DNA of 62,733 nt, filler included, from Choristocarpus tenellus KU-1152 (taxonomy: Eukaryota > Protista > Phaeophyceae): assembly GCA_964200185.2 (NCBI GenBank). It is 11 parts of 11 records of this genome, joined end to end, with 100 filler letters (N's around TTAATTAATTAA, not from the genome) between each part and the next. Parts side by side here need not be neighbours in the genome. Positions count along the whole stretch, not along the records: positions 17,650 to 22,570 come from CAXNAD020012525.1; 10 more parts are not named here. The stretch is one strand, 5' to 3'. Shown here one piece after another: positions 1-22,694 of the stretch (the stretch's first letter is position 1; the number at the start of each line of letters is the position of its first letter). The notes under the pieces are model-generated. The model ran no database searches. It was not told the DNA's origin and was given only the letters and a program-made list of their open reading frames with translations. The position numbers and the translations under genes are program-made.

Positions 1-119
1 CTTTTTTGGTGTGATTTGGTCACAAGTGTCGGATTTGAAATGTCAGCAAAAAAAAAAATGTTTGACCGAAACGGACACCCCCTCACAAACCACCCCCCAC
101 CCCCCAGATACTTTGACCC
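1..119. mobile_element. MITE family A, partial copy
   Basis: Ends with the TIR CCCCCAGATACTTTGACCC. Confidence 0.65.
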
Positions 120-303
120 TTACCTTTCAACATCAACCCTAATTCCTATCCCCTCGACGCCCTGGCCAGCCAGGAGTGGGGTAGGTAATGATGTATTGCC
201 TCCTGCAAGCAATGTTAATGGCTAGAATGCCCTCAGTGCCCTATCCCAAACATCCCCTTGGGTTACTCACTGGACCATTCCTCTGTGTGCTTGGTCTGCG
301 CAG

Positions 304-6300: not shown

Positions 6301-6579
6301 CAAATGGACGCGGCACTACCCTCCAAGATACTTTGGTGCTCTCACCATTCAACTTGTAGACCTGATATTACTCCCTGAACCTAATTCTACTCCCCTTCCT
6401 AGAAAATCCAAACATCCTCAGCTTCCCTCCTCTTGCCTAACTTCAGGACTGTCCAGAGCTTGGCCAATTCCATAGGAGTTGAGGCCATGCTTATTAATCC
6501 AGACACAATTGTTGCCAGTAGACCCGTCGAGGTGTGGCAGGAGGATGCTTCTGGGAGGTGGAAGAAGTCTTCAGACGAG
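304..6579 (+). CDS. Divergent DUF2009/UPF0652-family protein, internal part (at least 8 exons; start and stop not found in this contig)
   Basis: Phase-consistent GT-AG exons 304-470, 1164-1358, 2484-2741, 3047-3202, 3663-3765, 4665-4751, 5653-5726 and 6447-6579 (donor possibly 6588). The spliced product contains IPLRLVDSERKLLIALLGALHLAEY, NFKGNLGRLIRVACEVGRRHKLLNPDKMRGDHGKLMHILMD and FSCVTEIRTV. These match the DUF2009 motifs IPLRLxxxERxLL, EIGRRHKIMNPEKMR and FSCVxxIxTV as I recall them. Confidence 0.8.
612..870. mobile_element. MITE family B (~255 bp), full length, TSD TGGA, intronic
   Basis: TGGA[GAGCCAAAGAATCTTAGAG...CTCTAAGATACTCTCACTC]TGGA. Confidence 0.9.
3844..4086. mobile_element. 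MITE family B, right end eroded
   Basis: Collinear with 612-870. Confidence 0.82.
6098..6339. mobile_element. MITE family B, reverse orientation
   Basis: GAGTGAAAGTATCTTAGAGGGTAC...TACCCTCCAAGATACTTTGG. Confidence 0.85.
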
Positions 6580-7713
6580 GTCAGATTGGTAGGAAGACCA
6601 CTTTTTCAGACTGTGTACCATGTTGTTGGTCGAGCAAGGGAGATGATCGGTCATTCGTTTCAGTACACAATAGACCCAACTCGAATCCCTAACCCTGACT
6701 CAACTATAGTTCTGATCATTTAGGGTTGTGAACCGAGAATATTTACAACTCACGATTATAATTGGTTCAGCTTTCACCAGTTAATCGTCAGGACAATAGC
6801 ACACGGTCGGTAAGGTTCATTGCCGTGAAACTATAGGTCCCTAATGCTGGTGAGGGCCCCCGCCAGAGGTGAAGTATTTTGCAGCTAATATAATACACGT
6901 GTCACACATTCAGATGTATTTGCATGTGTAAATATGCACAGCAGAAACGAACAATTGGCCTTCTTTATTTGGTTATCCGTACGATACGATTAGCCGGGCG
7001 CGACAAGTGCCAGTTGGTGCTGGTTCACGACTCTACAACTATATCAAATATGCTGTGGTGGATAACGTCCTACGTTTGATTACAGCTTATCTCCCAGATT
7101 TGTTCAACATCGAACCACGTCTATTTTGGCAGGGCTTACGTTCTTGGTAAACTGGCTTACAGTAGCCAACAGGTCCCTGGAAAGGTTCAGCGGAAATCTA
7201 CTAATCAACCAATTGACCATTCAGATACGCCAACAATTCCTGTCAAACAAGGCCATGCCTCAACAAGATTCTTACAGAGAAGGGTCATGGTACACATATT
7301 TAAACTACCAGTGAACTTAGATTCTGGTTTGCAGGGTTGGCTACAGCAATGCCCGAATTACAACGATACAACTGTTTCCTCTAGACGGCAACTTAGCCTG
7401 CTGCTTTCAGGTCTCCTCTTGCCACCAGTTTCTTGTTGCCTGGTCTGAAGTACCTCAACCTAATGAAAGCTGAGGGCACTTTATTGTCTGCTGCTACTTC
7501 AAGAAGAACTGAGCAAAACCTCCAGAGAGATCTATTCAGAATTCCTAAACGCCTCCCAACTACCCTCCCACGATAACAACAGAAGAATTCCCTCGCCTTC
7601 AATCAATAAACAAGTTCTCCGAATCAAGAAAATATTCTTAGTGTGGGTATGGATGAGGGTAACCCCCCTGTTCAGCCTTGGAAGAGTTGGAGCTCAAGAT
7701 TGGTAGTGCATTG

Positions 7714-7983
7714 GAGTCAATGTGTCAAAGAGGGGACGAGTTTTGCCCTGTTTGTCCGTTCAGGGCTTGGCTTCCCCCGGGCTTTTTATTCCCCTTTTCG
7801 GTTTTCTTTGAGAACATTTTGGATTTCGGAGTTGGTAAAATGTATAGAACTACAAAAAGGTATGTCTGGACCAAGGATATTGACACTTGCTAACAAAAAC
7901 GATAGCCAAAATTCTTCAAAATCGCAGCATCGGATTTATGACCCCGAACGGACGTGGCCCTACCCTCTTAAATGATTTGGGTG
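7714..7983. mobile_element. MITE family B, reverse orientation
   Basis: Collinear with 6098-6339 and 22124-22369. Confidence 0.8.
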
Positions 7984-8053
7984 TTGACATTAGGATTAGG
8001 ATAAGTATTTTGTTGGATTTGTCCTAAGTTGGTGTTGTAGCAAGCGATGCGAA

Positions 8054-8235
8054 GGCTCATAGGATCTAGGGTGGGCGGGGGGGAAGGTCTACACCAGGGT
8101 GTCCATTTTGGGCCCTGACCAGGAAAACTGTACATACATTTCAACCTGACACATCAACCAAATCACCAAAAAGTTACGATATGGAAAAACGGGCCCCAAA
8201 TGGACAGCCGCCACCCCCCCCAGAGAGTTTGAGCC
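8054..8235. mobile_element. MITE family A, full length
   Basis: Both TIRs present; flanks CGAA and TGAA (4-bp TSD with one transition). Confidence 0.85.
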
Positions 8236-8813
8236 TGAACAACTTATGATCCATCCTGGATCGCAATCACAAATCAGTCTTGGCAAAACGTAATACTATT
8301 AGATAGATTTTGGACATGGATGGTGCAGATATATGTGGGGGTTCTCATCCCAGCATTGGCAATTTATGACGTACACTAAGCATATGCATGGTACTCAATT
8401 CTGATGTGGTTATAAAGCGGGTTCAATTCAGGGACAGGGATACTCTTGGAGTTGTTGTGGTTGAGGCTGGGTGTGTGAGGTAGAGCTGGGTTAGAGTGAG
8501 GGCTAGGACCAACCTAGGTACTGTTCAAGGTTTGACCGTTCTGTGTAAACTTTGATGTGCACTTGTCCGAGTTGGTACCAATTGGGGATAACTATCATGC
8601 AGTTTCAACCGGACTCTCAACTAAGCTGGTGTGGACATTGCTTGGGAAGCGTCTTAGTTACCTGCCAGAGAAAGAGTTCAGTGGATGAACTATATAATAT
8701 GGGGGCAGGGCCGAGCTTGACCCATTCACTCTTCAACAGGCTGATATTCACTACTCTTGCGCAAGTCATGGAAGGAATGCCTAAGGCATCAAGCAGGGCA
8801 AGAGGTTATGTCT

Positions 8814-8860
8814 GACCCAAAGTATCTGGGAGGGGGGTGAGGTCTAAACCAGGGTGCCAT
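8814..8860. mobile_element. MITE family A, left end at contig edge
   Basis: GACCCAAAGTATCTGGGAGGGGG, cut by the spacer. Confidence 0.75.
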
Positions 8861-8960
8861 NNNNNNNNNNNNNNNNNNNNNNNNNNNNNNNNNNNNNNNN
8901 NNNNTTAATTAATTAANNNNNNNNNNNNNNNNNNNNNNNNNNNNNNNNNNNNNNNNNNNN
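8861..8960. other. Artificial contig spacer (also at 13711, 17550, 22571, 28062, 36909, 39798, 46158, 49623 and 59752)
   Basis: Identical 100-nt N44-TTAATTAATTAA-N44 blocks; the core places stop codons in all six frames. Confidence 0.97.
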
Positions 8961-9020
8961 GCAACATCGGAGTTTGGCCCCCAAATGGACGTGGCTGTAC
9001 CCTCTAAGATACTTTGACTC
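8961..9020. mobile_element. MITE family B end at contig start
   Basis: CCCCAAATGGACGTGGCTGTACCCTCTAAGATACTTTGACTC. Confidence 0.75.
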
Positions 9021-9220
9021 AATCATGCGTGACCCAGGTGAGACAATGCATTGTACTGTGGGCAATACGGTAACACAAATACCCGCAACAATCTCTGAAT
9101 GTTGCCCACGGACAGAAATTTGTATGTAGTGCATGTGTTTCAAAATATTGGGGCATTTTCGTACAGCAGAGTGTGGTCGACCATTGTCGATTCTCCATTT
9201 TGTGCTTCTGAAATACTCAC

Positions 9221-9402
9221 CTCCCCGCTCCTCTAAATCTGCCCCAAGCTGAAACTCCACATCTGCCGCATCAGCGTATGTCCTGACCTGGTGTTGACAT
9301 ACTCAGCATGTGTGGGGGTGTTAGTGATGGTGGTTGGCGTAGAGGGACTTTGAATCAGTCTAAACACTATTCAGAACAATGGTGGTGATGTGAGCACTCG
9401 CT

Positions 9403-9435
<33 letters not shown>

Positions 9436-10715
9436 ACCACCACCACTATCAACCGTGATGATGTTTATACTCACTAAAAAGGTATCCTCCCACAGGACGA
9501 ATCAGAGTGGGAGATGGTCACCAACGGGTTCTTCGTGAAGGGTGGGCGTTGTTGGACATGTTAATGTAAGCAATCCGTCAAGCACAACCCTAGTGGGGGT
9601 CAAAACTGAGAGGCCTTCCATATGGTAGGTGATAAAATCTGATATGTGGACACAAATTCCTACGTGTTGACACCCTCAATATGACTTCATCCTTCCATTG
9701 CTTTTGCAACTTTTCTTTTTAGCGAGTTTTCACTTTTTCACCATTGCAAATATTGCCTCAAAAAAGATGTTTTTGAGATCTTTTGGTTGTCGTAACACTC
9801 TGTTACACTCGCTAAAAATATACTGTTTTAAGTACCTGAAAGCTAGAAATTAGTGTCCATGGTAGATTGTACATCTACTCTCTAAAACGTGTTCTGATGG
9901 GTGTTAAGTTGATAGCAAGGATACTATATCAAGAGCGAAGGATAGAATAGTGGAATTTCTTGACTCCTGGCCATCGTCATGTCTGGGCAGGAATTCCAGT
10001 TGCGCGAGAAAATGTGTGTGTCAAAGATAGAAACATTTTGATTCAAATATATACATGTTGTACGAGATATGTGTAAAGCTCTACACTTTCCATTGCTCAA
10101 CCACTCCAAAGCAACCAATAGAAATAGTTTGACGATAAGACCAAGGCTGCATTCGTGATATTGATTTGAGATGTCAGGTTCGCACCTGTTCCTCCAGAAT
10201 AGAGGTCCGTAGACGCTCTACCAGCTTACTCTTTTTCCCTGTGATACCTAGATCCCGAGACTCAAGGTGATTACGGAGCTCTTGTCGGTTAAGACTCGCC
10301 AAGTCGAGGCCCCTCAGCACCTTGGGGGAATTGTTGTTAGAGGGATTAGAGTCGTTTCTCTGCAGCTGTTGATACATGTTGCGGCCGTTTGCTTTCAAAC
10401 TTTGGTAATCAACGCACCAGATGAAACCAAACGAGGTAACGAGCGAATCGTGGCAGTCAACGAAGCTAGTTCGCATCCCATGGCTAAATTGAAATGAGTA
10501 CCTATGACTATGGAGCAGGTGGGGCAGCTAGATCGAGTAGTTCAGACGCCAACATTCAAGGAAAAACTAATATTGGGTGTCGAGATATTCTCTGCTGCTT
10601 TGTTGCCACTGGTTACCTTAAGCGTTCCCCATTCGTAATCGTCGCCACGGCATTTCCCCTCCCTTTTCTCTCTATTCTTGGCCCTTAGGGTGTTGACGAG
10701 ACCAAGGGCGGCCAT
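9221..10715 (-). CDS. SAP-domain protein, 5' part (3 exons; 3' end lost at the contig spacer)
   Basis: Exons 10715-10617, 10320-10186 and 9287-9221 splice in frame to MAALGLVNTLRAKNREKREGKCRGDDYEWGTLK|VLRGLDLASLNRQELRNHLESRDLGITGKKSKLVERL...EEQ|VRTYADAADVEFQLGADLEERG. The segment LxxLxxxELRxxLxxRxLxxxGxKxxLVERL is a canonical SAP motif. Confidence 0.8.
9490..9645. repeat. Dispersed repeat with a diverged copy at about 24750-24910
   Basis: Shared CAGGACGAATCAGAGTGGG, TCCGTCAA.CACAA, GGTCAAA..GAGAGGCCT and CTGATA blocks in the same order. Confidence 0.6.
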
Positions 10716-10890
10716 GGCGCTTCCTTCTTAGCCCCGACCTTCTGGTGTTTGATGAATTGGTGATTGTTGTGAGGGTGAAATGAAACCGTCGTATTCGACG
10801 ACGCCTTCCTCCGCCTCTTCCAACAACTACAAAGAGGGGATGCAACTTCTTTGATTGTCTCAACATCATCACCATCTTGTGGAATGTGGA

Positions 10891-12350
10891 ATGGCAAGCC
10901 TTCCACATACACAGACCTCCAGCTCGAAACAGCGATGGAACAGCTACAATAGCATACCTTCGCCGTATCCTCAGCCGGAGACTCTTTGCCCACCTGAAGG
11001 GTACCGCCTGGTCGGCAAGGGCCTGCATTGCGCCACTGTTGGACTACAGGTTCGAAACTAGAGACTGGGTGTTCCGTGGCAATGGTTTTCTCTCTGCGTC
11101 AATTTGGTCTCGGAGACTGAAAAATTGACCAGAAAATGAAAGACAAGCATAATCTGATTGGGTTGAGTCGAGTTGGATGGCAGGGGTTGATGGCAAAATT
11201 GCAAGTACACGAAGGATTCCACGTCTCTGTTGGTTGTCAGACTGTTGTTAATCGGGACCAGTCAACTTGTCAACTTGGATAAATGCCTGGTATATATGCT
11301 ATTTTGTTTTCACGGGAAGAAATTCCTTCCCCTATGAAAGGACTTGGAGATATCTGATGTATCCCCACTCGATATCCTGTTGACGATGTTCTTGCTGACG
11401 TACGTTTTGGACAAAGCCGGAAATTTTACCTCGAAACATAATCTAGCAGCTCTTTTTGATCAGGCGGAGACCTTGGTAGTGTCATTTATCGCCTGCAATG
11501 AACTCATGCGAAGTTTTTGTTCAGATTGATTTGTCTGTAGTGCTAGTAGACATAATATACAACTTCCCGTGAATGGCCTAGAAGTACGTATCCCTTGGCC
11601 TCGAGCCCCGCTAATGCCTCTGTTGATATTACCACGATCCCCTGGCAGCCTGCAAGTTTCCCCTTCCTGTCGAGGTTGAAGTTACGCACAGCGATTAATT
11701 TGTCACGGGTACCTGTTCACGACAAGGCAGCAGCATTCTTCGAGAACATGGGAGTGGAAATGGTGAGAGCATATCTTGTACCCGTGTGTGTGGTTGGCGA
11801 TGAAGAGCATATAAAATCTATTTTTGTCCTGAGAAGAGAGGTTTAAGTATAGTTCTATGGCAAGTGAACTAGAGCTCTAGATTATGAAATGCACTCCAAA
11901 TGATTAATGTGCAAGGCAAACTTCAACCAATTGATTCTATGCACAGTCCAGTAGAATGAGTCTGTACACAGTTTCACATCAGTGACATGTTGAAGAGAGA
12001 AACCTATAAAGGTGAGAATGTATGTATAACCCTTGCATTGAATATGAACCCCCTTCTTGGGCAAGTCTTGTGCAGAAACTTGGAGTCCGAAAGATTCTCC
12101 AGGGAAGAGTATCTTTGTACTTCCCATCCTGGCATCTAACTAGAACACAAAGCTCCCAACTTCCAATTCCACCCTCACTTCCTCCCTTTCCTCTCCTCTG
12201 ATGTGTCGAACTGGTGGGGCACGATGCTGGGCAGCTGATTCCTTGCTCAGAGGTGTTTGATGGCCCATACGATATTTGGGAGGAGGGGGTTAAGGAGGCA
12301 CTAGAGGTGGTACTTGAGGGAAGCAACCACCCAATGATCATCCTCGACAG
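10891..12350 (+). CDS. Siw14/Oca (PFA-DSP) family phosphatase-like protein, 5' part, probably catalytically inactive
   Basis: Exons 10891-11049, 11649-11762 and 12235-12350 give LCPPEGYRLVGKGLHC...Q|PASFPFLSRLKLRTAINLS...FFENMGVEM|...EEGVKEALEVVLEGSNHPMIILD. This parallels the family pattern PPxNFxxVxxGxYRS...NFPFLxxLxLKTII...EALxxxLDxxNHPxLIHC. Confidence 0.8.
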
Positions 12351-13381
12351 GTCTAATTTTGAAAAGTTTGTGACCAGTAAGAACATGGAACCTGAGACAA
12401 GACATGAATCCGGGTGGGGTGGGAGTGACATTGCATAATGTGGTGCCATTAAACCAGCGCTGTATGAAGGAGACTGACCTGTTTGAGGACGTGTATTGCA
12501 GATGCTACTGCTGCTGTGTGGTTACGTTTGTTTTTTATGCTGCAGGGTCTAGTTTGGCTTATCCTTCAGTCCGGTTGAAGCTTTGGTTTATGTATCGAAA
12601 TAGCTCCTATTCCGTGAGCACCAGGATTGTATGTGCACGCCAACCTATGCCCTTGAAACCTCCTAGCTAAAACTCCTCAGTTTTATTTGTACCTCAAGAC
12701 TACCAGCTGCTGCCACTGTACCTAATCTGTCGCATTATTACCCTCCCTGATTCGAACATTTTGAAAAGCTTCCCAAGGTCTTACAAAGGTGGACGGAACA
12801 GTTACAACATTTTTTTTTTTAAGACGAGACTCGTACCCGAACAAGAGGCATTTGTTTGAATACGAGTTGAAGATTGGTAGGCACAGACATGTCCTTCACC
12901 CACCCAGGGCAGTCGGAAGTAGGGGGTGGGCGCCTATGCACATTGTCATTCACATCCCGAATTAAAATGCCTACCAGGTGCTGGGCACTCCAGAGGACTT
13001 TTTTTTTGTAAGTGTCCCAATTTGCGGCCAAGTAGTAAAAAAAAAAATCCCAATTCAACACACTTTGCCACTTCTCCACGGAGAACCCTCCTGATCTCGC
13101 TACCAGTACTGCATACAAGCTCAACAAACGGCTTTGAATATTCACTCTCTTGAAGTGTGCCACTCCAGGCACCACACCTCCTTAGCTCTTTGAATATTCA
13201 CTCTTCTTGTTCGAGCGTCTCACGTTTCTTACCCGGCTGTTGACCAAGAGTTAACCTTGCGTCGTCCACAGCACTCTGCCAGGTTGTGTCAGGTAGAGAA
13301 CCCCTCGCTCCGTCGGGCAATGCTTTCATGCAACAACCGATTGGCCGACGCGCGTAAAAAGAAAAGAAAAAAAATGCTGTT

Positions 13382-13420
13382 GCTATGCTATGCTATGCTA
13401 TGCTATGCTATGCTATGCTA
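13382..13420. repeat. (GCTAT)n microsatellite
   Basis: Direct reading. Confidence 0.9.
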
Positions 13421-13810
13421 CCCCTACCGTGCTCGCTGCTACCATTTTTTATTTTTTCTGAAAGTTGCTCTTCTTCTTGGTTGGGTGTGGCAACCCCCCT
13501 CACCAGTTTCTACCCCTCTGCCTGAACCGTGAATGTAATTTAGAGCCGGTGTGCAGTATATGGCTGTGAGAGAAATCGATGACGGTACGATGTGCTCAGC
13601 CCTCTTTACTGTGATCAGTATAACTCATACCGACCATCCACCCCCCCGCCCCCCCGCCCCCCCCCCCCCCCCCCCGCCACCCGCCCCCCCCCCCCCCCCC
13701 CCCCCCTCCCNNNNNNNNNNNNNNNNNNNNNNNNNNNNNNNNNNNNNNNNNNNNTTAATTAATTAANNNNNNNNNNNNNNNNNNNNNNNNNNNNNNNNNN
13801 NNNNNNNNNN

Positions 13811-15060
13811 GTAGGACATGTATTTTCAATATTTGGCTCACCTGAGTTTTTGAGTGAAAGTATCGTAGAGGGTACAAGTTTTGCCCTGTTTGTCCATTTC
13901 GGGCTTGACTTCCCACGGGTTTTCTATCGCATTTTTCTACTCTGAAATGTTTCGGAGTAGGTCAAATGTATACGTTATCAGAAGATGTGTCTAGAACAAG
14001 GATATTGATACTTCCGAACAAACACGATGCCCCAAACTACACAAAATCGCACATTGCATTTTTGCCCCCAAACGGACGCAGCTCTACCCTCTAAGATATT
14101 TTGACTCTGTTACACTCCGATCAAGGTGCTGAGTTTGAAAATAGTATTATTGCAGAGCTGCATCTGTCTTTGGTTACAAGAAAACCAAAACCACACTTTA
14201 TCATCCTCAAGGAAATTCTGTGTTAGAGAGAGTACATGCTATGTTGCATTCTATGCTAGCAATGTATATCTCTGTTGCTGAGGATAACTGGGCATCGTTA
14301 CTGCCTTTCGTACAGTTAGCCCATGATACAGCATTCAGTGCAAAGTTGTATGGAACTCCATTTTTCCTTCTGTTTGGAAGACAAGCTCATTTACCTGTTG
14401 ATATTATCCTTGGTTTGTCTAATGCTGATTCAGATGTCGCTACTGAAGAGTTTACTCAGCAAACCAAAGATAATTTACAATTTGCATTTGAGATGGCATG
14501 TCGTAATCTCCAATGAGCACAATAAAAATCAGGAACGTGTCAACTATCATCTAGTGTTCCCCGTTTTCGTACCTGGTATCAAGTTCTAGTCCATAGGCCA
14601 CATGAGAGTACTGATGGTCCGAATCCGAGGTTACTTCACCCTTGGAGGGGTCCATATGAAGCACATTCTAAGGTATCACCTATCATGTACAGGGTAGTAT
14701 TTACCTGGAAACCGACATCCATTTTCCGTTCATCTGGGTAGAATGAAGTGTTAATATCAAGTCCAACCTCCCACACCAGATTTAAATGAAATGGATTATT
14801 TGTTTCTGGGAAAACCATTACCATTACCAGATGTTGGCCATCAAATCTCTCTGCCTGTTATTGGTCAATGCACTATTGATAGCATTATTGGACATAGACC
14901 TGGTCCTGGTCGTTGTTTGTCCACTAATGTTATCTATCGCCTTCGTCCTTATGGCTATGGACCATCTTGTGATCTTCACAAAGGAATCGAACAGACCTCA
15001 CAATGCCGTGAAATGATTGCAGCCTATCGTGCAGTAAAAGGGTTGGATAACCAGTATTGT
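13811..15060 (+). mobile_element. Ty3/Gypsy (chromovirus-like) integrase plus chromodomain, degenerate, interrupted by a MITE
   Basis: After removing the MITE at 13852-14107 it reads FGSPELLHSDQGAEFEN...TTLYHPQGNSVLERVH (second D and the E of D,D35E), then GTPFFLLFGRQA, the GPY motif HPWRGPY, and a chromodomain IDSIIGHR...YRLRPYGYGPSCD...IAAYR. Frameshifts and stops are present. Confidence 0.88.
13852..14107. mobile_element. MITE family B inserted in the Gypsy integrase core, TSD TTTT/TGTT
   Basis: GAG...CTC termini; removing the element plus 4 bp restores CCT GAG TTG TTA CAC TCC GAT (PELLHSD). Confidence 0.9.
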
Positions 15061-15089
15061 TACAACGCGGAAGTCTCGGTAGGACCTTC

Positions 15090-16440
15090 ATGTTATAGCA
15101 TGCACCAGAAGCTTACCTCCACAGCATGTATAGCTCCAATCCACATGCCTATAGAAGATGCTGGTGCTCGTGTAACTCTCTCAGGATACTTCAGCAGTTC
15201 AGGCAATCCAACGAGTGTCAGGTTAGCAGGACAGGGGGTACTGCTCTCTTTCAATGCCAATGAGTGTATGGCATCAGATATATTATCTAAAAACCGTTGC
15301 AACATTCCCAAGTTACAGATCTTACTCTGCAACCTTTAGCAAATCAGAGTTCCTCTTTATAAGGTTCCCCACGCGTGTGTACTGCTCACGCTTGTTAGAA
15401 CTTGAGAAGAAATACTCGTGCTACTCACCTGTAACAGTAACGTTCTTGTCCCACACAGTGTTGACTTGATAATTCCTATTTACTGTTATCTTAATCCTTT
15501 GCATAGTCTATATATCACGCATTGCCACAATATTGTAACCTATTGTTTCAGTAAAGAGATTATTGTATATATGTGCGGTACAGATTCTTGTCAATTTTGT
15601 TGTTGTTTGTTTAATTGTGTGTTTATTTATTTTTTATGACTTGTGTGTCTTGGCAGGATCTTGTAGTACCCACATATCGTAATCCTTTTCATAGGTTGAC
15701 CATCTAGTTTAGACAAATTGTTTGTTTGTCATTTTGTCATAGATGGGCATAGCCTATCGTTTTGTGAAGAGATGAGATAACTGGTAACAGATGTCAGTTA
15801 ACCTGTTCACGACCAGCTCTGACTTGACATCTCGTGTTTACCAGGTTTATCAATCCTTGCAAATAGACTATACATATGTTGGTGGATTTGGATAAATTAT
15901 TAATAATTTTTTTATCTAACTCTCCTCGTTTGCATGAGTGGACACATGCGATGGTGAAGAGACTGTATTGCTGCTCACAATAGCACTGTGTGCTAGAGGT
16001 GACTGTTCATTACATCATGTCATGTTTTCATGAAATTGATTTATTGATCATCATGAAATGACTAACCCCATAATAAAACAAAAATGAAGATTCAAGTCTA
16101 CCACTAGGTAAGATATGGAGACTTCAGATGAGTCATACATGTTATTTATTTTATTTTGAGTGGCGTGATCCCCCCAACATGATGTAATGACTGTACAGTC
16201 ACCTCGTATCGTTTTAGGAGAGTTGAGCCACCAACGCCATACGTCTGAGTTGCCCACTTGGAATATTCTAGTCATCATGAGCAATATTCCAATCGATGTC
16301 AGAATTGAGGAAGCAGAATGGGTACACACATTTGATCTCATCATTTGCTGTGTTGATTTGGTATGTAACACGTGATGTTTTCATGCATCGGAGTGGCGAT
16401 CAAATCATCGTATAACACCCGTATAGCAATGTTGAATCAC
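15090..16440 (-). mobile_element. Highly decayed Gypsy-like reverse transcriptase/RNase H relic
   Basis: Faint collinear remnants: QMMRSNVCTHSASS (compare GIIRPSxSP), LNSPKTIRGD, IMGLVIS (compare MPxGLxNS) and AIVSSNT. No intact YxDD. Confidence 0.35.
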
Positions 16441-16853
16441 AAATGATAGTCAAACCGTTTATTGACATCGTACAGTGTTTGGTCCTCATATCCCCATTCT
16501 GAGTATCCTCTGTTTAAAACAAGATAATAGAGACCTATATACTGACCACATATACCTCTCACCTCGTCCTTAGGCTGATTGATATGCTGATTCCATACTC
16601 TCAGACCTCATAAACTTGATTGATGTGCTGAATACACAACATTAACCTTAGGCTAATGTTATCCTGATCAGATATTCATTAATGCCTCATTTATATATTA
16701 TACTTCATTTTGTATTAATGGAACCATGTACTACAATGATGCAATAGTGTACTAGCAGTCACACATATTTCCCATTTCCCTCCCAGAGCTCACTATTTGG
16801 TTGACTGTGAATCATGTTTACATGGCTTCAAGGCCGATCAGAAGGGAGGGTGA

Positions 16854-17199
16854 TGTGGAAAGTATGTTTGTCGGTTTTTATATTGTTACACTGATTGAGG
16901 TTCTTTATTAAGCATCCATGATTCCAGCAGCGGATCTTCGGTGAGAATGAATCCATGGAATCTCTTTAAGGGTCCAGTTCCATAGATATGGGATGGCTCT
17001 TCGTTCAGAGTTATCAAACATGAAAGATTCAGTTCGTTCTCACGTCTTGACGTTTTCTGATAATCCTCTCTCACTAGATCCTCAGTCTATCAGTTCTCAC
17101 AGTTTTTATACAAGCTGTCTTGCACTTGTCCAACCTTAACCTCGTCATCTCGGTTACGGTTTGTCTAGTCCATCTTGCCTGGTGATTCTCTTCGCCACA
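16854..17199 (+). mobile_element. 3' LTR with polypurine tract, probably belonging to the Gypsy at 13811
   Basis: Termini TGTGG...CCACA form an inverted pair, directly preceded by the purine tract AGAAGGGAGGGTGA. Confidence 0.6.
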
Positions 17200-17649
17200 C
17201 TTATCTGAGTGAACCACGCTGCCACAGAATCATACGATTCATATATGTTGGAGCTGGATCCTGCTGTGCAGGGGATTGTTATGTCTGTACAGTGCAGTCG
17301 TCTAAACTTGATGTGATACACTGTATGTACTGTACTGAACTGCACAGTACAGTAGGTGCCCCTATTTTGGGCCAAATATTCTGAACCAAATCGAAAAATA
17401 TGCAATTTTGTACCGCTTTTTTGACATGCTCAAGAAATAGGATTTTGTACCGGAATTCTCGTATTCGGGTGATTTGGCACAAAATCTCAGAGATATTCAT
17501 GCGAGTTTAGAACGCGCGTAAAAATTTCTCGCGAAAAGTGCCTTTCTTCNNNNNNNNNNNNNNNNNNNNNNNNNNNNNNNNNNNNNNNNNNNNTTAATTA
17601 ATTAANNNNNNNNNNNNNNNNNNNNNNNNNNNNNNNNNNNNNNNNNNNN

Positions 17650-20068
17650 CTACAGACACCAAGCAATCTCGACAGGTTTATCACCTTTATGTTCTTTGAT
17701 GATTTTGGGGATACTTTAACATATATATCCCCAGCATTTTGGATGCAGCGCACTACTCCGGATCCATCTGACCCCCTCAACCCAACTAACTCCCTTTCGA
17801 GACCTTTTGGCCGTGATCCTCGCACACAGCTGGATGCCTTAATACCCAACTTTGATGGGGATATAGAGGTTGGAGGATTAGATTCCTTCATTGAGCAAGA
17901 CTCAAAGTATCTGGGGGGAGTGCCAGCTGTCCAATCGGGGCACATTTTCCATGTCGTAATTTTTGGGTGATTTGGTTGCATGTGTCAGATGGATAATGTA
18001 AGTTCACTTCTCCTGGTCAGGGCCAAAATGGACACCCTGGTGTAGACCCTCCCCCCACTACCAGATACTTTGGGCCTAACGCAGACAGAATTTCAGAGAG
18101 GTACGAGAAGTACTGGAGAGACTGATGTCTGCTAGGCAAAAAAACAGGGAGAGAGCCAACACTTTGATTGCCAGGTCTTCCCCAAGACTGGAACTCAAAC
18201 CAGATGAACTAGTATTTGTGAAGAAAGCAGACAGCTCTATCCATGGGGGAAAACTAGGCAAGACAAGAGTGGGCAAGAAGCTAGTTCATTAAAGATGGAC
18301 GGGACCTTGGACTGTAAAGGAAATTTCTCACAAGAGTAGTAGCATGACGTTCGAATTGCATGGTAGGCAAACACGCACACGTAATGTTCATGCTTCTCAT
18401 GTGAAACCCTTCCATGTAAGACCCATCCATTTGATACATAGCTTCCAATATGAATATGCCCAAATGGTGTGGGAATCGGACCTAGGTCTAGCAGCAGAAT
18501 CTGTGGTAGTAACACCAATGTATGCCCTTACTGACAAAAAAGCAGTATTGTCACCATCGAATGTGCGGCATTGGGAATACAAGGGGGAAGTACCAGAATG
18601 GGCATTTGTCAGATTGGGTAACCGAAACAGAAGCTATGGGCAGCTTCACCCCACTACAGTGGGATATTTTCCATACACTTTGGGACCTCTACAATCCACC
18701 CACGAGCCCATGCCCAACTGACATTCCCCGCCAAGAAAAACTCTTGTCCCGAGAGGATGCATTAGTCCTTTTCCCCACAGGCACCACTGTCAAGAAGTCG
18801 TGGAGAGACGAGAAAGGAAGAGACATGTGGTACACAGGCACAGTTTTGGAGTTCAAGTCACCTTACTGGAGGGTACGGTTTAACAATGGAGATTGGTAGG
18901 AATTCCATAAGAGCGAAATGAGTCGCTTCTCCCAAAGATGATCCAACAGGTAACAACTTTATGCCCAGAAGACAAGGTGAGTGAGAATTAGCTGGTACGT
19001 GCCAGAACAAAGGATTGAGGTATTGATAGTCATAGTCCCCGCATGGAGTATAGGATTGCAGAAAGTTGGAACCGTCAAGCCGACCACATCAGAGCATATA
19101 GTAATATATGGGTTGCATTATTCTTTCTTTCTTTCTGTTAGCCCTGATCAAACCATTTTTTTTTCTGTCAGCACTGATCTCACCATTTTTTTTGCTTTGT
19201 TTTGTTTTTGTTTTTGTTTTCTTTATGATTTCCTGTTTTAAGCACCTGCAGCCTTGAGTATGCTTTAGGCGTAAGACAGGAAACAATTAAATGATACTTT
19301 GGAACTTCTGAAAGTTGTGCTTTAGAAGGAGCAAGTTTATACCCAGATTAGGCTAAATCAGACCAACTCTGATGGCATTCTTTGACCCTTGGGACAGATT
19401 TCTCCAAGGAAACAAGGATATCTGTTGACCTATTTTAGGACTAGTTGGAGGTATGTCTTTTTTCTGCCACAGTACGATCTGAGGTGATTGATGGTATCTA
19501 TTGTCGTCACTGGTGACAATCACCTATGGTAAGCATGAAACATGTGTTCCTAGTTCACGCTGGGGAACATGTTATAGGCGAATAGCACGATATTTCTTCC
19601 TGCAATCTAACAGTACGAGCAGTATATACACGTAGGGATTTTACAAAGAGGAACTCCGATTTGCTAGAAGATGCAGATTAATATTTGTAGTACGTAGGGA
19701 ACCTTACAGAAAGGAACGCCGATTTGCTAGAAGTTGCAGAATTATATTTGTAATTTAAGTATGTATACAACAGTTTACAGATGTCTCTTAACTTCTAGAT
19801 AATAGGAAACTGTGGAGGATGTTAAAAAAGGGTTTGTCATCAACAATATGATTCACTTCTTGAAAATTGATAAGCAGTGCATTAACTGACACCAAGCAGT
19901 GGCTATCAATCGAAAGAAGTACCCTTGTTTAGCTAACCAGATGTGCGTTGGACTCCCTTGACTGTTGGAGTATCCTAGGAGGCTTGTACGAACATTAGCG
20001 TCATTTATAGATCTGTGGATTGGAGCTACACATCCTGTGGAGGTAACCTTCTGGAGCGTGTTGTAACA
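17650..20068 (+). mobile_element. Ty3/Gypsy 3' half: integrase C-terminus, chromodomain, Tudor-like domain, 3' region, PPT and 3' LTR (19570-20068)
   Basis: Reads PFGRDPRTQLD...RWTGPWTV (GPY/F), RNVHASHVKPFH, chromo-like YALTDKK...WEYKG/KYQNGHLSDWVTE and Tudor-like GTTVKKSW...WYTGTVLEFKSPYWRVRFNNGDW*EF. GGGGAACA precedes an LTR bounded by TGTTA...TAACA. It carries two in-frame stops and a frameshift in a G run. Confidence 0.85.
17899..18076. mobile_element. MITE family A inserted in the Gypsy integrase frame
   Basis: Both TIRs present. Removing it (with a few flanking bases) rejoins FIEQ to RRQNFREV; the TSD is degenerate. Confidence 0.85.
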
Positions 20069-20328
20069 TTACACCAGGGTGTCCATTCAGACCCTAACCC
20101 AGAGAAGTGAACTTACATTATCCATCCGACGCATGCAACCAAATTACCCAAAAATCACGACATGAAAAAATGGGCTCCGAATGGACAGCGCGCCCCGCCA
20201 GCCGCCCCCCCCCCCCCCACTACCCTCCCCCGACCAAACACACACCANNNNNNNNNNTTTTTTTAGTTCCCGCCCACCCCCCACCCCCCCCCCCTCCCCC
20301 CCCCCCCCCCCCTCCCCCCTCCCCCCCC

Positions 20329-20359
<31 letters not shown>

Positions 20360-20374
20360 CAGATACTTTGAGCC
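20069..20374. mobile_element. MITE family A lacking its left ~30 bp, directly abutting the Gypsy LTR; the poly-C tract is probably mis-assembled
   Basis: Starts TTACACCAGGGTGTCC immediately after the LTR terminal CA and ends CAGATACTTTGAGCC. Confidence 0.75.
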
Positions 20375-20702
20375 TCCATCAATCACACACATATCCTAGA
20401 CTTAGCACCCATTTCAACATAAGGGGGTAGATTTCCACCTTGTTTCGAACTTTAGAAGATAGTTCCAAAATTATTATATAGATATAGATGTTCCTCATAA
20501 ACATGAAAATATTAAACAAGCTTACCGCCATTGCTTTGCAGCTTGAGGGTACCTCTTCTTTACCCCAACCCTCCTCCTATACCATATTCGCCACTGTATA
20601 TCAAAATTTGGCGTACGTCTATGAAGAGGTCGTTTCAGTACTATATTTCACCATGCTAAAATGAAATAAACTACTAATCCGCTTCATGAACAAAAAAAAT
20701 TA

Positions 20703-21137
20703 GAGTCAAAGCATTTTAGAGGGTAGGGCCGAGTCCGTTTGGGGTCCAAAATCCAATATTGCGATTTTGACGAATTTTGGATCAAAGAACCTGGGTAGGG
20801 GGGGGATGTCTACACTAGGGTGTCCATTCGGGGCCTGACCAGTAGAAGTGCACATATATTATCCATCCGACGCATTCAACCAAATTCACCCAAAATTGCA
20901 ACATGGAAAAATGGTCCCTGACTGGACAGCTGCCATCCCACCCCAAAACACTTTGAGACTTTTGGCTATCGTGTTTGATAGCAAGTGTGAATATGTTTGT
21001 TCTACACACACCAGTCTTACACATTTTAGGTAACTGTGTTCACACAGAAAACCGAAAAAGAGCTTGAAAAAACAAGGGAAGCCAAGCCCCTAATGACAAA
21101 CAGGGCAAAATTCCTATCCTCTTACATGCTTTGGCTC
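20703..21137. mobile_element. MITE family B containing a nested family A copy
   Basis: GAGTCAAAGCATTTTAGAGGGTAGGG...TATCCTCTTACATGCTTTGGCTC. Confidence 0.85.
20779..20959. mobile_element. MITE family A nested in a family B copy, TSD TTTT
   Basis: The family B consensus GAATTTTGGCTATC is split as GAA-TTTT[A]TTTT-GGCTATC. Confidence 0.88.
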
Positions 21138-21234
21138 TTTGATGACAAAAGTCATTGTATATATGACAGTGTATATTTTCGTACTTCTTGAGCACAAGGA
21201 TATGAAGATAGACACATGCAGGTCTATAAAACAC

Positions 21235-21333
21235 ATAATCCATCCGACGCACGCAACCAAATCGCCAAGAAATCGTGATGGCAAAATGATCCCCAAATGG
21301 ACAGCCGTCACCCACTCCCAGATATTTTGCTTC
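21235..21333. mobile_element. MITE family A, right-half fragment
   Basis: GCAACCAAATC...CCCCAAATGGACAGCCG...CCCAGATATTTTG. Confidence 0.65.
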
Positions 21334-21948
21334 CCTTCTTGCCTATCTTCCCGGTGTACTTAGTGTGTCTTATATGCATGTATGAGAATGAATTATGCCA
21401 CCAATAAGTATTTTTCGTCAATATTTCGTTGGAAATACCAAAATGATATTCACAATTACATAAGAATTGACCTGCATATATATATGTATATATACATCTC
21501 GTCCACACATCTTAATGATAAAATTAGAGGATTCTAATGTCAGAGTCGGACTTACAGTCGAGATTTGCGTACGCTATGTAAACTTAAATAAACAATAACC
21601 ACGTTGATTATTAATTTACAAAACTCTGTTGTCACATCCAAATCTTTTTCTCCTAACCCTACTTAAGATAGATACACTATTTGTTAATCATTCCTGCAGT
21701 AGTTCATCGACAACATCGTAACAACATGATGACTTCTGAAAGAGGTTTGTGTGGGGTTTTTAATTCGAGCTTATGAATTAGAGGAAAAATAAATATAAGA
21801 GAACTTCAGAAAGAGGGATTGCTCTAAGACTGCCTGTCTGTGGCCGGAAAGAAAGGTAATGATACATTAAGGGGAAAATATGCTAAACTGATAATAGAAA
21901 ATTTAGTCAAAGGTGGTACTGAATACGTATCCAGATGAGTTAAGAATA

Positions 21949-22120
21949 GACCCAAAGTATCTGGGGGGGTGGGGGCGTCTACACGAGGGTGTCCATTTGG
22001 ACAAAAATCGGGAAAAGTGCATTTGCATTATCATTATGGCAGCCAAATCACACAAAAATCGCGATATAAAAAATTTGACCCGAAATGGACAGCCGCCACC
22101 CCTCCCAGATACTTTGAGCC
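21949..22120. mobile_element. MITE family A, full length, 3 bp from a family B copy
   Basis: GACCCAAAGTATCTGGGG...CCCAGATACTTTGAGCC. Confidence 0.88.
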
Positions 22121-22123
22121 ATA

Positions 22124-22369
22124 GAGCCAGAGCATTTAAGAGGGTAGGAGTTTTGCCCTGTTTTTCCATTCGGGGCTTGGCTTACAACAGGAGTTTTATA
22201 CCCTTTTTCTGTTTTCTGTGTGAATTACGTAAAATGTGTACGTCTATGAAAGGTGTGTCCAGAGCAAGGGATATTGACTCTTGCTAACAAACACGATAGC
22301 CAAAAATCATCAAAATCGCAACATCGGATTCAAACGGACGTGGCCCTACCCTCTTGAATGCTTTGGCTG
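22124..22369. mobile_element. MITE family B, reverse orientation
   Basis: GAGCCAGAGCATTTAAGAGGGTAGG...CCTACCCTCTTGAATGCTTTGGCTG. Confidence 0.85.
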
Positions 22370-22511
22370 GTAAAGAAATTGAAACAGTAGAGGGTGAGGA
22401 GGTTGGTGCTTGATCTACTCGTTACAGCTATTACTCAATGGTGAGCATATATCTGGGGAAGATAATATACCTGGATTACAGATCGTGCTGCATTTTGTTA
22501 CTCGTGTAGAA

Positions 22512-22694
22512 GACCCAAAGTATCTGGGAGGGGGGGGGGGGGCTACACCAAGGTGTCCATTTGGACCAAANNNNNNNNNNNNNNNNNNNNNNNNNNNNNN
22601 NNNNNNNNNNNNNNTTAATTAATTAANNNNNNNNNNNNNNNNNNNNNNNNNNNNNNNNNNNNNNNNNNNNCCCCCCTCCCAGATACTTTGGGTC
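22512..22694. mobile_element. Two MITE family A ends on either side of a spacer (22512-22570 and 22671-22694)
   Basis: Both carry the GACCCAAAGTATCTGGGAGGGGG end in opposite orientation, so they are probably different copies. Confidence 0.7.

Follow-up and report, generated by a model that had tools for sequence, protein, structure and literature searches.

A decayed Ty3/Gypsy retrotransposon of Choristocarpus tenellus with a predicted chromodomain fold ahead of a Tudor domain at the integrase C-terminus

The targeting chromodomains of the chromoviruses are said, in work by Gao et al. from 2008, to lie at the integrase C-terminus. In Ectocarpus, the element Gypsy-10_Ec32 was described with a Tudor domain at the C-terminus of its integrase and termed the first transposable element with a Tudor domain (Genome Biol 2025, PMC12477816). 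That paper reports one full-length copy together with many deletion derivatives, and places the reader-bearing Gypsy lineages of Ectocarpus outside the chromoviruses and Chronos. In its accessible part, the Tudor alone is annotated and a chromodomain call for this lineage was not found.

Here, we analysed a 62,733-nucleotide stretch of C. tenellus KU-1152 DNA (the window). Its positions 17722-18941 on the + strand are the 3′ end of a Ty3/Gypsy LTR retrotransposon pol, and the copy is dead. Its sequence places it in the stramenopile lineage whose type is Gypsy-10_Ec32. Most probably, this is a decayed pol end of that lineage with a fixed extension past the GPY/F module that consists of a chromo-fold domain, a helical linker and a Tudor domain. 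This reading draws on the sequence homology and the order of the domains, on full-length one-ORF pols that carry the extension, and on the folds predicted for two of its domains, as described below.

The same lineage and C-terminal layout are found in Gypsy-10_Ec32 and in Gypsy-1_tMin of Tribonema minus (PMC12477816). In a by-eye comparison, the Gypsy-10_Ec32 pol tail (WEYRGRYQDG...LQLDVFHALW...PYWKVRYPDGDWEEL) is colinear with the window from the GPY/F end across the WEYRGxYxDG...LQLDVFHALW block to the PYWxVRYxDGDWEEL Tudor. Together with the phmmer matches given below, this shows in the window the mark of the Gypsy-10_Ec32-type lineage, a colinear tail of the integrase whose last domain is a Tudor. 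The deletion derivatives reported there also fit the decayed copies seen here.

The window pol is interrupted by a MITE and by two in-frame stops, and it carries a +1 frameshift (Table 1). Frame 2 reads past the TAA through RWTGPWTV...NVHASHVKPFH and ...MYALTDKK...RHWEYKG until the five-G run, and frame 0 takes over at 18588 with KYQNGHLSDWVTETEA...FPTGTTVKKSW...YWRVRFNNGDW, the TAG, EFHKSEMSRFSQR and the final TGA. The ORF pieces were searched separately, and an X was set at each break solely in the display alignment. The upstream integrase homology extends to 17722, beyond the start at 18280 given in the original prediction.

Table 1. Features of the retrotransposon copy and its flanks, in window positions
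Feature	Position	Strand	Sequence or basis
Tail of another copy of a high-copy MITE-like repeat	17650..17721	.	Piece cut at 17650
Integrase segment downstream of the catalytic core, frame 1	17722..17896	+	...ISPAFWMQR...FGRDPRTQLDALIP...SFIEQ
181-bp MITE-like insertion splitting the integrase ORF	17897..18077	.	Terminal inverted repeats, type CAAAGTATCTGGGGGG
Integrase linker ahead of the GPY/F module, frame 2 from 18080	18078..18289	+	RRQNFREVREVLERL...KKLVH
In-frame TAA stop, specific to the window copy	18290..18292	+	Translation; exact contig agrees
GPY/F module, the SH3-like integrase C-terminal domain (RWTGPWTV...VKPFHVRP)	18293..18424	+	Alignment with relatives
Predicted chromodomain-fold domain, frame 2 to 18586, then frame 0 from 18588	18485..18701	+	AlphaFold, VIA-align
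Five-G run with +1 frameshift, inside the chromo-fold domain	18584..18588	+	Frame switch in translation
Linker with predicted helix (...SREDALxxFP)	18702..18770	+	Helix 146-160, model of P0003:82-312
PTM/DIR17-type Tudor (FPTGTTVKKSW...YWRVRFNNGDW, stop, EFHKSEM)	18771..18920	+	PF21743, AlphaFold model
In-frame TAG stop within the Tudor domain	18897..18899	+	Translation
Natural pol end, TGA after ...SRFSQR	18939..18941	+	Translation
Same-element sequence 3′ of pol	18942..19794	+	blastn to L001

Logan contigs of the runs X1 and X2 are identical to the window over 18030-18391 and 18451-18796 with zero differences, so the breaks are present in the DNA of this copy. Both runs possibly come from the assembly's own sample and are therefore not independent support for the breaks. 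Run X3 of the same study, from another organism, contributed no matching reads. The frameshift in the G run and the two stops had been proposed originally, and all three are borne out by the translation, the first stop and the frameshift also by these exact contigs. Because of the MITE, the stops and the frameshift, the window copy cannot work and itself has no function.

Among the other copies in these runs, both stop positions are found as sense codons and the MITE is missing. The first base of the stop codon is G, giving a sense codon, in most of them at 18290 and in some at 18897, where the Choristocarpus contig L001 reads GDWEEL. The relatives and L001 read WEYKGK/WEYRGR through the G run uninterrupted, and the exact contig over 18451-18796 confirms the run itself. 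The X1 and X2 contigs connect 17896 to 18078 with the 181 bases omitted, and inverted-repeat families were identified at the insertion.

L001 is likewise unbroken over the MITE site (2441/2440), and the Choristocarpus protein P0114 unites both flanking protein pieces, with 73% identity to the upstream one and 79% to the downstream one. The upstream piece is also ~49% identical to residues 1546-1603 of the Ectocarpus protein P0153, immediately past its rve domain, and the downstream piece is 37-40% identical to P0040, P0153 and P0003.

At the 5′ side, DNA homology to L001 begins at 17722, and in blastp of the piece 17650-17907 the relatives align from residue 25 onward only. The summed contig depth is ~4e5 in the bin of the preceding repeat tail versus 20-400 nearby. 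At the 3′ side, a single blastn alignment runs from 18078 to 19794 against L001 2440-4185 (75% over 1789 nt). The L001 pol stops at the same point (...SRFSQK), and the relatives finish 10-25 residues past the Tudor. The L001 homology continues ~850 nt beyond the pol stop, in a stretch that possibly includes the polypurine tract and a portion of a 3′ LTR; the piece takes in just the 3′ end of the element and has no second LTR.

The family is large. Of the 169 phmmer matches that the 103-aa tail piece (18588-18896) gives at E<=1e-3, 42 reach E<=1e-10 and the best has an E of 1e-25, and the piece 18293-18586 reaches blastp E values as low as 6e-29 against family members. The nearest DNA relatives are C. 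tenellus contigs at 75-82%, and the protein identity to members from Ectocarpus, Nemacystus and metagenomes is ~40-48%. The order of SH3, chromo-like and Tudor units is in register over at least 20 long relatives, down to ~30% identity. A Pfam search of the extra C-terminal tails in a distant clade gave no match.

Full-length pol ORFs bearing the tail come from Ectocarpus and Nemacystus. The 1881-aa P0153 of Ectocarpus has RVT_1, RT_RNaseH, Integrase_H2C2, rve and PF21743 all in one ORF. The original prediction had proposed a search for intact copies with RT-RNH-INT-chromo-Tudor in a single ORF. P0004, P0040 and P0124 combine integrase with Tudor. The H2C2 and rve core falls beyond the cut edge of the window piece and is present in the tail-aligning P0153, P0004 and P0040.

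The GPY/F module of a Ty3/Gypsy pol is seen in the window by alignment and in the model of a relative. It aligns with the TGPW...VKxFH block of all the relatives. Residues 1-42 of the P0003 model form a three-strand SH3/KOW-like unit (Z ~5.2, rmsd 1.3-1.9), and P0095 matches PF24626 SH3_Tf2-1 with an E of 2.9e-5. That a chromo-fold domain and then a PTM/DIR17 Tudor follow this module, as had been predicted, holds in register throughout the lineage, full-length pol ORFs included.

The identification of the C-terminal domain as a PTM/DIR17-type Tudor is supported. PF21743 scores 30.4 bits in P0003, over the gathering cut-off of 27.2, and 25.7 bits, below it, in the unbroken L001; at E<=1 it matches 50 of the 99 members. 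Residues 160-216 of the P0003:82-312 model (pLDDT 93-97) form four strands and a helix in a Tudor/SH3-like barrel, so the barrel is seen in a relative and not in the window copy. The PDB matches of this region include PHF19 (Z 5.2), SMN (5.1), the BAHCC1 TTD (5.0) and RDM15 (4.9), in a Z range shared with KOW/SH3 barrels of 4.9-5.7. The Tudor call of the original prediction is supported on these grounds.

The aromatic columns of this domain (F171, Y186, Y188, Y192, W193, Y197 and W202 in the P0003-model numbering) are 52-92% conserved among mostly degraded members. At the comparable putative cage places, the window reads W, Y, F, Y, W, F and W.

In the window piece itself, PF21743 gives a weak match that stays below the cut-off (16.5 bits, E 0.007), and the domain is severed by the stop, as might be expected if this copy alone had captured a host fragment or resembled a Tudor by chance. 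Such an origin is vanishingly improbable and is refuted by the 169 relatives with the full-length Ectocarpus and Nemacystus pol ORFs. The same position is conserved in distant members, and the fusion is published for Gypsy-10_Ec32 and a Tribonema element (PMC12477816). Neither a missing barrel nor a family that stops before this segment was found, since the extension is conserved in register, full-length ORFs included.

The segment between the GPY/F module and the Tudor carries the family motif YTLxDR...WEYRGxYxDGxxSxW...LQLDVFHALWxLY, which is kept in 71 relatives (alignment A2). Its AlphaFold model alone has a pLDDT of 90.2 with strands at 12-20 and 26-33, a short third strand and a helix at 54-67, that is, the three-stranded antiparallel sheet and C-terminal helix of a chromodomain. 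Against 48,161 PDB chains, VIA-align ranks 7vrf first (Z 6.7, 59 of 61 residues, rmsd 2.5), followed by 3mts (6.2), 3g7l (6.2) and 6mha (5.9), all Z scores being below 8 in the range that VIA-align grades as middling. Each of the first 38 VIA rows is a chromodomain, a chromoshadow domain or a protein in which one of them is known.

In the ESM Atlas shape search, the best two matches are Chromo clusters (TM 0.65 and 0.60), and the ESM feature search likewise ranks Chromo clusters first. Foldseek against the PDB is not significant for this domain (best E 0.2-0.3), and its highest-probability rows are chromodomains; noise from peptide deformylase and COMMD structures is mixed in among the matches. 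No chromodomain turned up when PDB sequences were searched with a profile of the domain. In the profile-to-PDB sequence searches with the whole module and with this domain, NDUFS6, a NUDIX hydrolase and XPH1 came up as chance matches (E 0.2-1).

The Pfam Chromo profile (PF00385) matches 0 of the 99 family members at E<=1, and nothing in the window piece at E<=10. The chromo part of the original prediction hence stands as a predicted fold, by VIA-align and the Atlas, and fails as a Pfam Chromo match. It is the modelled fold that supports the middle segment as a chromodomain.

The profile result would also suit a middle segment that is chromo-shaped and does not read histones, being a spacer, a chromoshadow-like dimerisation unit or a nucleic-acid binder. 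The 'dual reader' would then be wrong and the Tudor alone, if either, would read chromatin. We hold this to be somewhat unlikely. The chromoshadow structures 1e0b, 6fto, 9cea and 8jzw and the non-histone chromodomains of cpSRP43, eEF3 and GEN1 are among the structural matches, but the chromoshadow domains are outranked by the best matches, histone-binding chromodomains solved with H3K9me3 peptide (7vrf, 3g7l, 6mha and 4u68).

The putative cage gives a divided picture on the same point. When the sequences are aligned by eye at the DR motif that they share, the tyrosine position that comes first in the HP1 cage (Y24, W45, Y48) falls on prolines in the family, which suggests a non-canonical pocket or none. 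Against a non-reading role, the aromatics of WEYRGxY and SxW are 85-90% conserved even in decayed copies. The second and third residues of a cage may be supplied by the conserved Y of WEYRG (89%) and the following Y/F (61%).

As a whole, the module of P0003 is modelled as three separate small beta domains (pLDDT 87.3, pTM 0.66). Its region-specific PDB matches are chromodomains at 67-136 and Tudor/KOW barrels at 148-224. The helical linker between the two keeps its SRExAL motif among the relatives. Foldseek of the whole module against the PDB is not significant, with weak multi-Tudor matches such as SETDB1 (E ~6e-3).

The chromo and Tudor module would tether the integration complex to nucleosomes with particular methyl marks. 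The tethering would bias the landing sites of new copies, as chromodomains do in chromoviruses. By this analogy, we infer that the module may guide integration by chromatin. PMC12477816 reports Ectocarpus as being without H3K9me and H3K27me3, and associates H4K20me3 and H3K79me2 with its repeats. Speculatively, therefore, the targets would more likely be H4K20me3 or H3K79me2.

A bolder proposal, which we put forward tentatively and think rather unlikely, is that the Gypsy-10-type lineage from yellow-green to brown algae has an ancestral cassette of a divergent chromodomain and a Tudor that would jointly recognise a stramenopile-specific mark combination, e.g. H4K20me3 and/or H3K79me2 where H3K9me and H3K27me3 are missing. 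If true, the two-domain cassette would be a natural bivalent device for integration targeting and a ready probe of brown-algal repressive chromatin.

The module may instead act after integration or on other partners and have no part in site choice; it might bind methyl-arginine proteins in a small-RNA/silencing pathway, say, or recruit host chromatin factors that shield the element. The Tudor class reads methyl-arginine too, the structural matches include SMN and TDRD3, and intact Ectocarpus elements associate with small RNAs and H3K79me2 (PMC12477816). We nevertheless judge it quite improbable, as the extreme C-terminal place right after GPY/F is the site of the chromovirus targeting chromodomains and as the closest Pfam family (PTM/DIR17 Tudor), PHF19, BAHCC1 and RDM15 are histone-lysine readers.

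Chromatin readers borne by retrotransposons reveal the marks that define safe landing zones in a genome. As brown algae reportedly are without H3K9 and H3K27 methyl marks (PMC12477816), the ligands of the integrase domains would indicate the stand-in for heterochromatin. The isolated chromo-fold and Tudor domains could serve as affinity reagents. What is added here is a conserved chromodomain-fold unit in a Tudor-bearing lineage, missed by sequence profiles, a tandem that is probably ancestral to this lineage, and the occurrence of this Gypsy family, decayed, in a Choristocarpus-like genome.

No characterisation of the architecture was known to the original prediction, and its novelty does not stand in that form after the 2025 publication of the brown-algal Gypsy integrase with a C-terminal Tudor. 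What the accessible part of that paper (PMC12477816) apparently leaves undescribed is just the chromo-fold domain in front of the Tudor. With the fusion published and the chromodomain uncalled there, the tandem is therefore an incremental refinement.

In comparison with the known systems, chromoviruses such as MAGGY and Tf1 likewise have a chromodomain-fold unit straight after the integrase GPY/F, presumed to tether them to marked nucleosomes, whereas the domain of the window lineage is missed by Pfam Chromo and has a second reader-type domain behind it. The PTM/DIR17-like Tudor (PF21743; CDD cd20401) is a single Tudor of plant type; no other Pfam domain matches the family as well, and no other recurs. 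Both share the motif GTxVxK/R...GxVxDY..PYWRVxYxDGDxEEL and a modelled SH3-like barrel with a short helix after it, but here the domain is fused to a retrotransposon integrase and not to a host transcription or chromatin factor, with most members, the window included, scoring below the cut-off.

The SETDB1 triple Tudor, the 53BP1 tandem Tudor and the CHD1 double chromodomain also set several small Royal-family barrels in series, and such multi-reader proteins are the top whole-model Foldseek matches, weak as these are. They have no sequence relationship to the module, in which two different Royal-family types are joined by a helix. Compared with Gypsy-10_Ec32 itself, the window copy comes from another brown alga, and structure prediction adds a chromo-fold between the GPY/F module and the Tudor.

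The plus strand of the genomic piece at 17650-22570, read by three-frame translation and an ORF list, carries a decayed coding region, the broken 3′ end of a Ty3/Gypsy pol. The motifs, stops and frameshift that the original prediction described at 18280-18940 are all present in the translation. The integrase ORF extends upstream of that segment and is split there by an insertion resembling a MITE. This pol copy is a fossil.

Features of the decayed pol tail and the repeats around it
Feature	Position	Strand	Frame	Detail
Integrase segment	17722-17896	+	1
MITE-like insertion	17897-18077		no frame	181 bp
Integrase linker	18080-18289	+	2
Stop	18290-18292	+	2	TAA
GPY/F motif and following segment	18293-18586	+	2	RWTGPWTV...VKPFH, then ...MYALTDKK...RHWEYKG
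Five-G run	18584-18588		between frames	+1 frame slip
Segment after the slip	18588-18896	+	0	KYQNGHLSDW...LQWDIFHTLWDLY...FPTGTTVKKSW...YWRVRFNNGDW
Stop	18897-18899	+	0	TAG
Terminal segment	18900-18938	+	0	EFHKSEMSRFSQR
Final stop	18939-18941	+	0	TGA
MITE copies (very abundant element, about 175-180 bp)	17897-18077, 17650-17721, about 20057-20375, 20783-20950, 21230-21330, 21947-22118, 22510-22570			inverted ends of type CAAAGTATCTGGGGGG, AGRCYCAAAGTATCTGGGGGG
Second inverted-repeat family, pairs	20704-20741 / 22331-22368, 21095-21141 / 22120-22166, 20957-20994 / 22271-22308, 20750-20780 / 22300-22330			motif CAAAGCATTTxAGAGGGTAGG
Long poly-C tract	20195-20362			nine N at 20239-20247; within MITE copy

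The stop damage is private to this copy. Logan contigs of two sequencing runs have G at position 18290 in most other copies and G at 18897 in some, each restoring a sense codon. The contigs of run X1, which like the other run may be the assembly's own source and so not independent, show zero differences over 18030-18391 and 18451-18796. Being exact over 18290 and 18584-18588, they place both the TAA stop and the five-G tract in the reads. As to the insertion, contigs of X1 and of a second run, X2, skip exactly its 181 bases, the Choristocarpus tenellus contig L001 runs through this point without a break and the protein P0114 of this species joins both integrase flanks directly.

The closest DNA relatives are contigs of the same assembly (GCA_964200185.2). 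L001 matches 17722-17898 at 82% and then directly 18078-19794 at 75%, without the MITE. Its copy is also broken upstream, is in frame across the G-run site (WEYKGK...) and has an unbroken Tudor segment ending in ...GDWEELNKSEMSRFSQK-stop. Another contig, L002, is a deletion derivative keeping only the last part. Fragments of the pol 3′ end seem to far outnumber full tails, and the excess fits such derivatives together with the P0114 model, in which the integrase linker jumps straight to the Tudor domain. P0114, an annotated 153-aa 'gene' (L001 2241-3221, CAXNAD020001305.1), is a spliced prediction over a frameshifted retrotransposon remnant and not a host gene. The summed contig depth is about 1e4 at the Tudor-coding 18742-18897 and at 19444-19599, 500 nt downstream, and 20-130 over the chromo-fold part.

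The remaining sequence, from about 19950 to 22570, is a patchwork in which copies of the MITE alternate with members of a second inverted-repeat family and with a poly-C tract that contains an N gap. Counting both full and partial ones, the MITE has at least seven copies within 4.9 kb, over which the summed contig depth reaches 1e5-4e5 versus about 20 for single-copy stretches, and L001 and L002 hold copies about 80% alike. The second family suggests another short non-autonomous element in opposite orientations, while the poly-C tract looks like an assembly gap or low-quality homopolymer rather than biology. At 19641-19752, 3′ of pol, a 49-nt unit is directly duplicated (88% identical, spacing 63 nt).

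The tail is a lineage feature, as its relatives, including full-length pol ORFs, continue through the Tudor segment. A word-index protein search returned one match, a short C. tenellus protein with 65% identity. With the 103-aa piece at 18588-18896 as query, an exhaustive search gave 169 protein matches at E<=1e-3, of which 42 reached E<=1e-10; the long ones are retrotransposon pols. In one ORF, P0153 (Ectocarpus sp. CCAP 1310/34, 1881 aa) carries RVT_1, RNase H, Integrase_H2C2, rve and the PTM/DIR17-type Tudor (PF21743). Integrase domains and Tudor also occur together in P0004, P0040 and P0124, and another relative, P0014, comes from Nemacystus decipiens.

A single layout is common to the alignment of 22 long relatives and the window pieces, where an X marks each break for display only. 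It starts with TGPW...VKxFHxRP and an acidic/aromatic linker, continues with P-LYTLxDR...WEYRGxYxDGxxSxW..E.E...SF.PLQLDVFHALWxLY and a variable proline-rich stretch, and ends with SRExAL..FPxGTxV...GxVxDY..PYWRVRYxDGDWEEL..xE. Even members at only about 30% identity keep these blocks. In a distant metagenome clade, an extra conserved stretch of about 130 aa lies beyond the Tudor domain (P0088:400-554, P0095:436-603, P0122:255-390, P0069:281-420). Its pattern NFG..VGD..RY....GW.RG... resembles another Tudor/Agenet-like barrel, and a Pfam search of these four extensions gave no match.

The Tudor assignment is supported by both profile and model. PF21743 scores 16.5 bits (E 0.007) in the window piece, ended early by the stop, 25.7 bits in the unbroken L001 copy and 30.4 bits in the relative P0003, above the cut-off of 27.2. 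It matches 50 of 99 family members at E<=1, with weak Tudor_3 matches in three and Tudor_5 in one. In an AlphaFold2 model of P0003:82-312 built on the 99-sequence alignment (mean pLDDT 87.3), residues 160-216 reach pLDDT 93-97 and form a predicted SH3-like barrel of the Tudor kind. VIA-align matches it to the Tudor domains of PHF19, SMN, BAHCC1, RDM15 and ERCC6L2 and to KOW/SH3 barrels at middling Z values of 4.6-5.7, and the ligand is not given by the fold; the module might bind methyl-arginine proteins or act post-integration.

The chromo-like claim stands at the level of predicted fold and lacks support from sequence: the Pfam Chromo profile matched 0 of 99 members, and the family profile found no chromodomain among PDB sequences. 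Chromodomains are the only matches to residues 67-136 of the whole-module model (Oxpecker, Chd1, SUV39H1, Chp1, HP1). Modelled alone with 71 sequences (pLDDT 90.2), the domain consists of a pair of long strands and a third, shorter one, with a helix at the C-terminus. Against 48,161 PDB representatives, rows 1-38 are chromodomains, chromoshadow domains or established chromodomain proteins (cpSRP43, eEF3/New1, GEN1 and ZMET2), led by 7vrf (Z 6.7, rmsd 2.5, 59/61 residues). Chromo clusters rank 1 and 2 in the ESM Atlas shape search (TM 0.65 and 0.60) and lead the language-model feature search at 0.89, under the tool's 0.9 line. The Foldseek E-values are not significant, its highest-probability rows (0.93) being Chd1 chromodomains. 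We conclude that the middle segment has a predicted chromodomain fold too divergent for profile detection. The unit may instead be structural or chromoshadow-like. As to a possible methyl-lysine cage, the WEYRGxY and SxW aromatics are 85-90% conserved across the family, and the first HP1 cage tyrosine falls opposite family prolines in a by-eye alignment on the shared DR motif.

With the chromodomain-like reading, the conserved tail comprises three units, the SH3-like GPY/F, the chromo fold and Tudor, in a lineage spanning brown algae and the published Tribonema element. By analogy with chromoviral integrases, it would tether the intasome to marked nucleosomes and bias integration. Ectocarpus is reported to lack H3K9me1/2/3 and H3K27me3, and its H3K79me2 and H4K20me3 to be associated with low expression and repeats (PMC12477816). 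These two marks are the obvious, if putative, candidates for the tail.

According to the same article (Genome Biol 2025), four Ectocarpus Gypsy lineages bear chromatin-reader domains, three of them with putative C-terminal chromodomains. Gypsy-10_Ec32 has a C-terminal Tudor domain, to its authors' knowledge the first in a reported TE, and a homolog in Tribonema minus. A brown-algal Gypsy integrase with a fused Tudor is thus already known. The original prediction, essentially right on chromo and Tudor units after the integrase, had presented the architecture as not known to be characterised; this view is outdated in the case of Tudor and remains reasonable in that of the chromo-fold unit. The available text makes no chromodomain call for the Gypsy-10_Ec32 lineage, and the supplement prints its pol sequence and aligns Tudor (cd20401) only. 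Our addition is incremental structural annotation. The window holds a further, decayed member of this lineage, and by eye the last ~200 residues of the Gypsy-10_Ec32 pol are colinear with it in every layout block.
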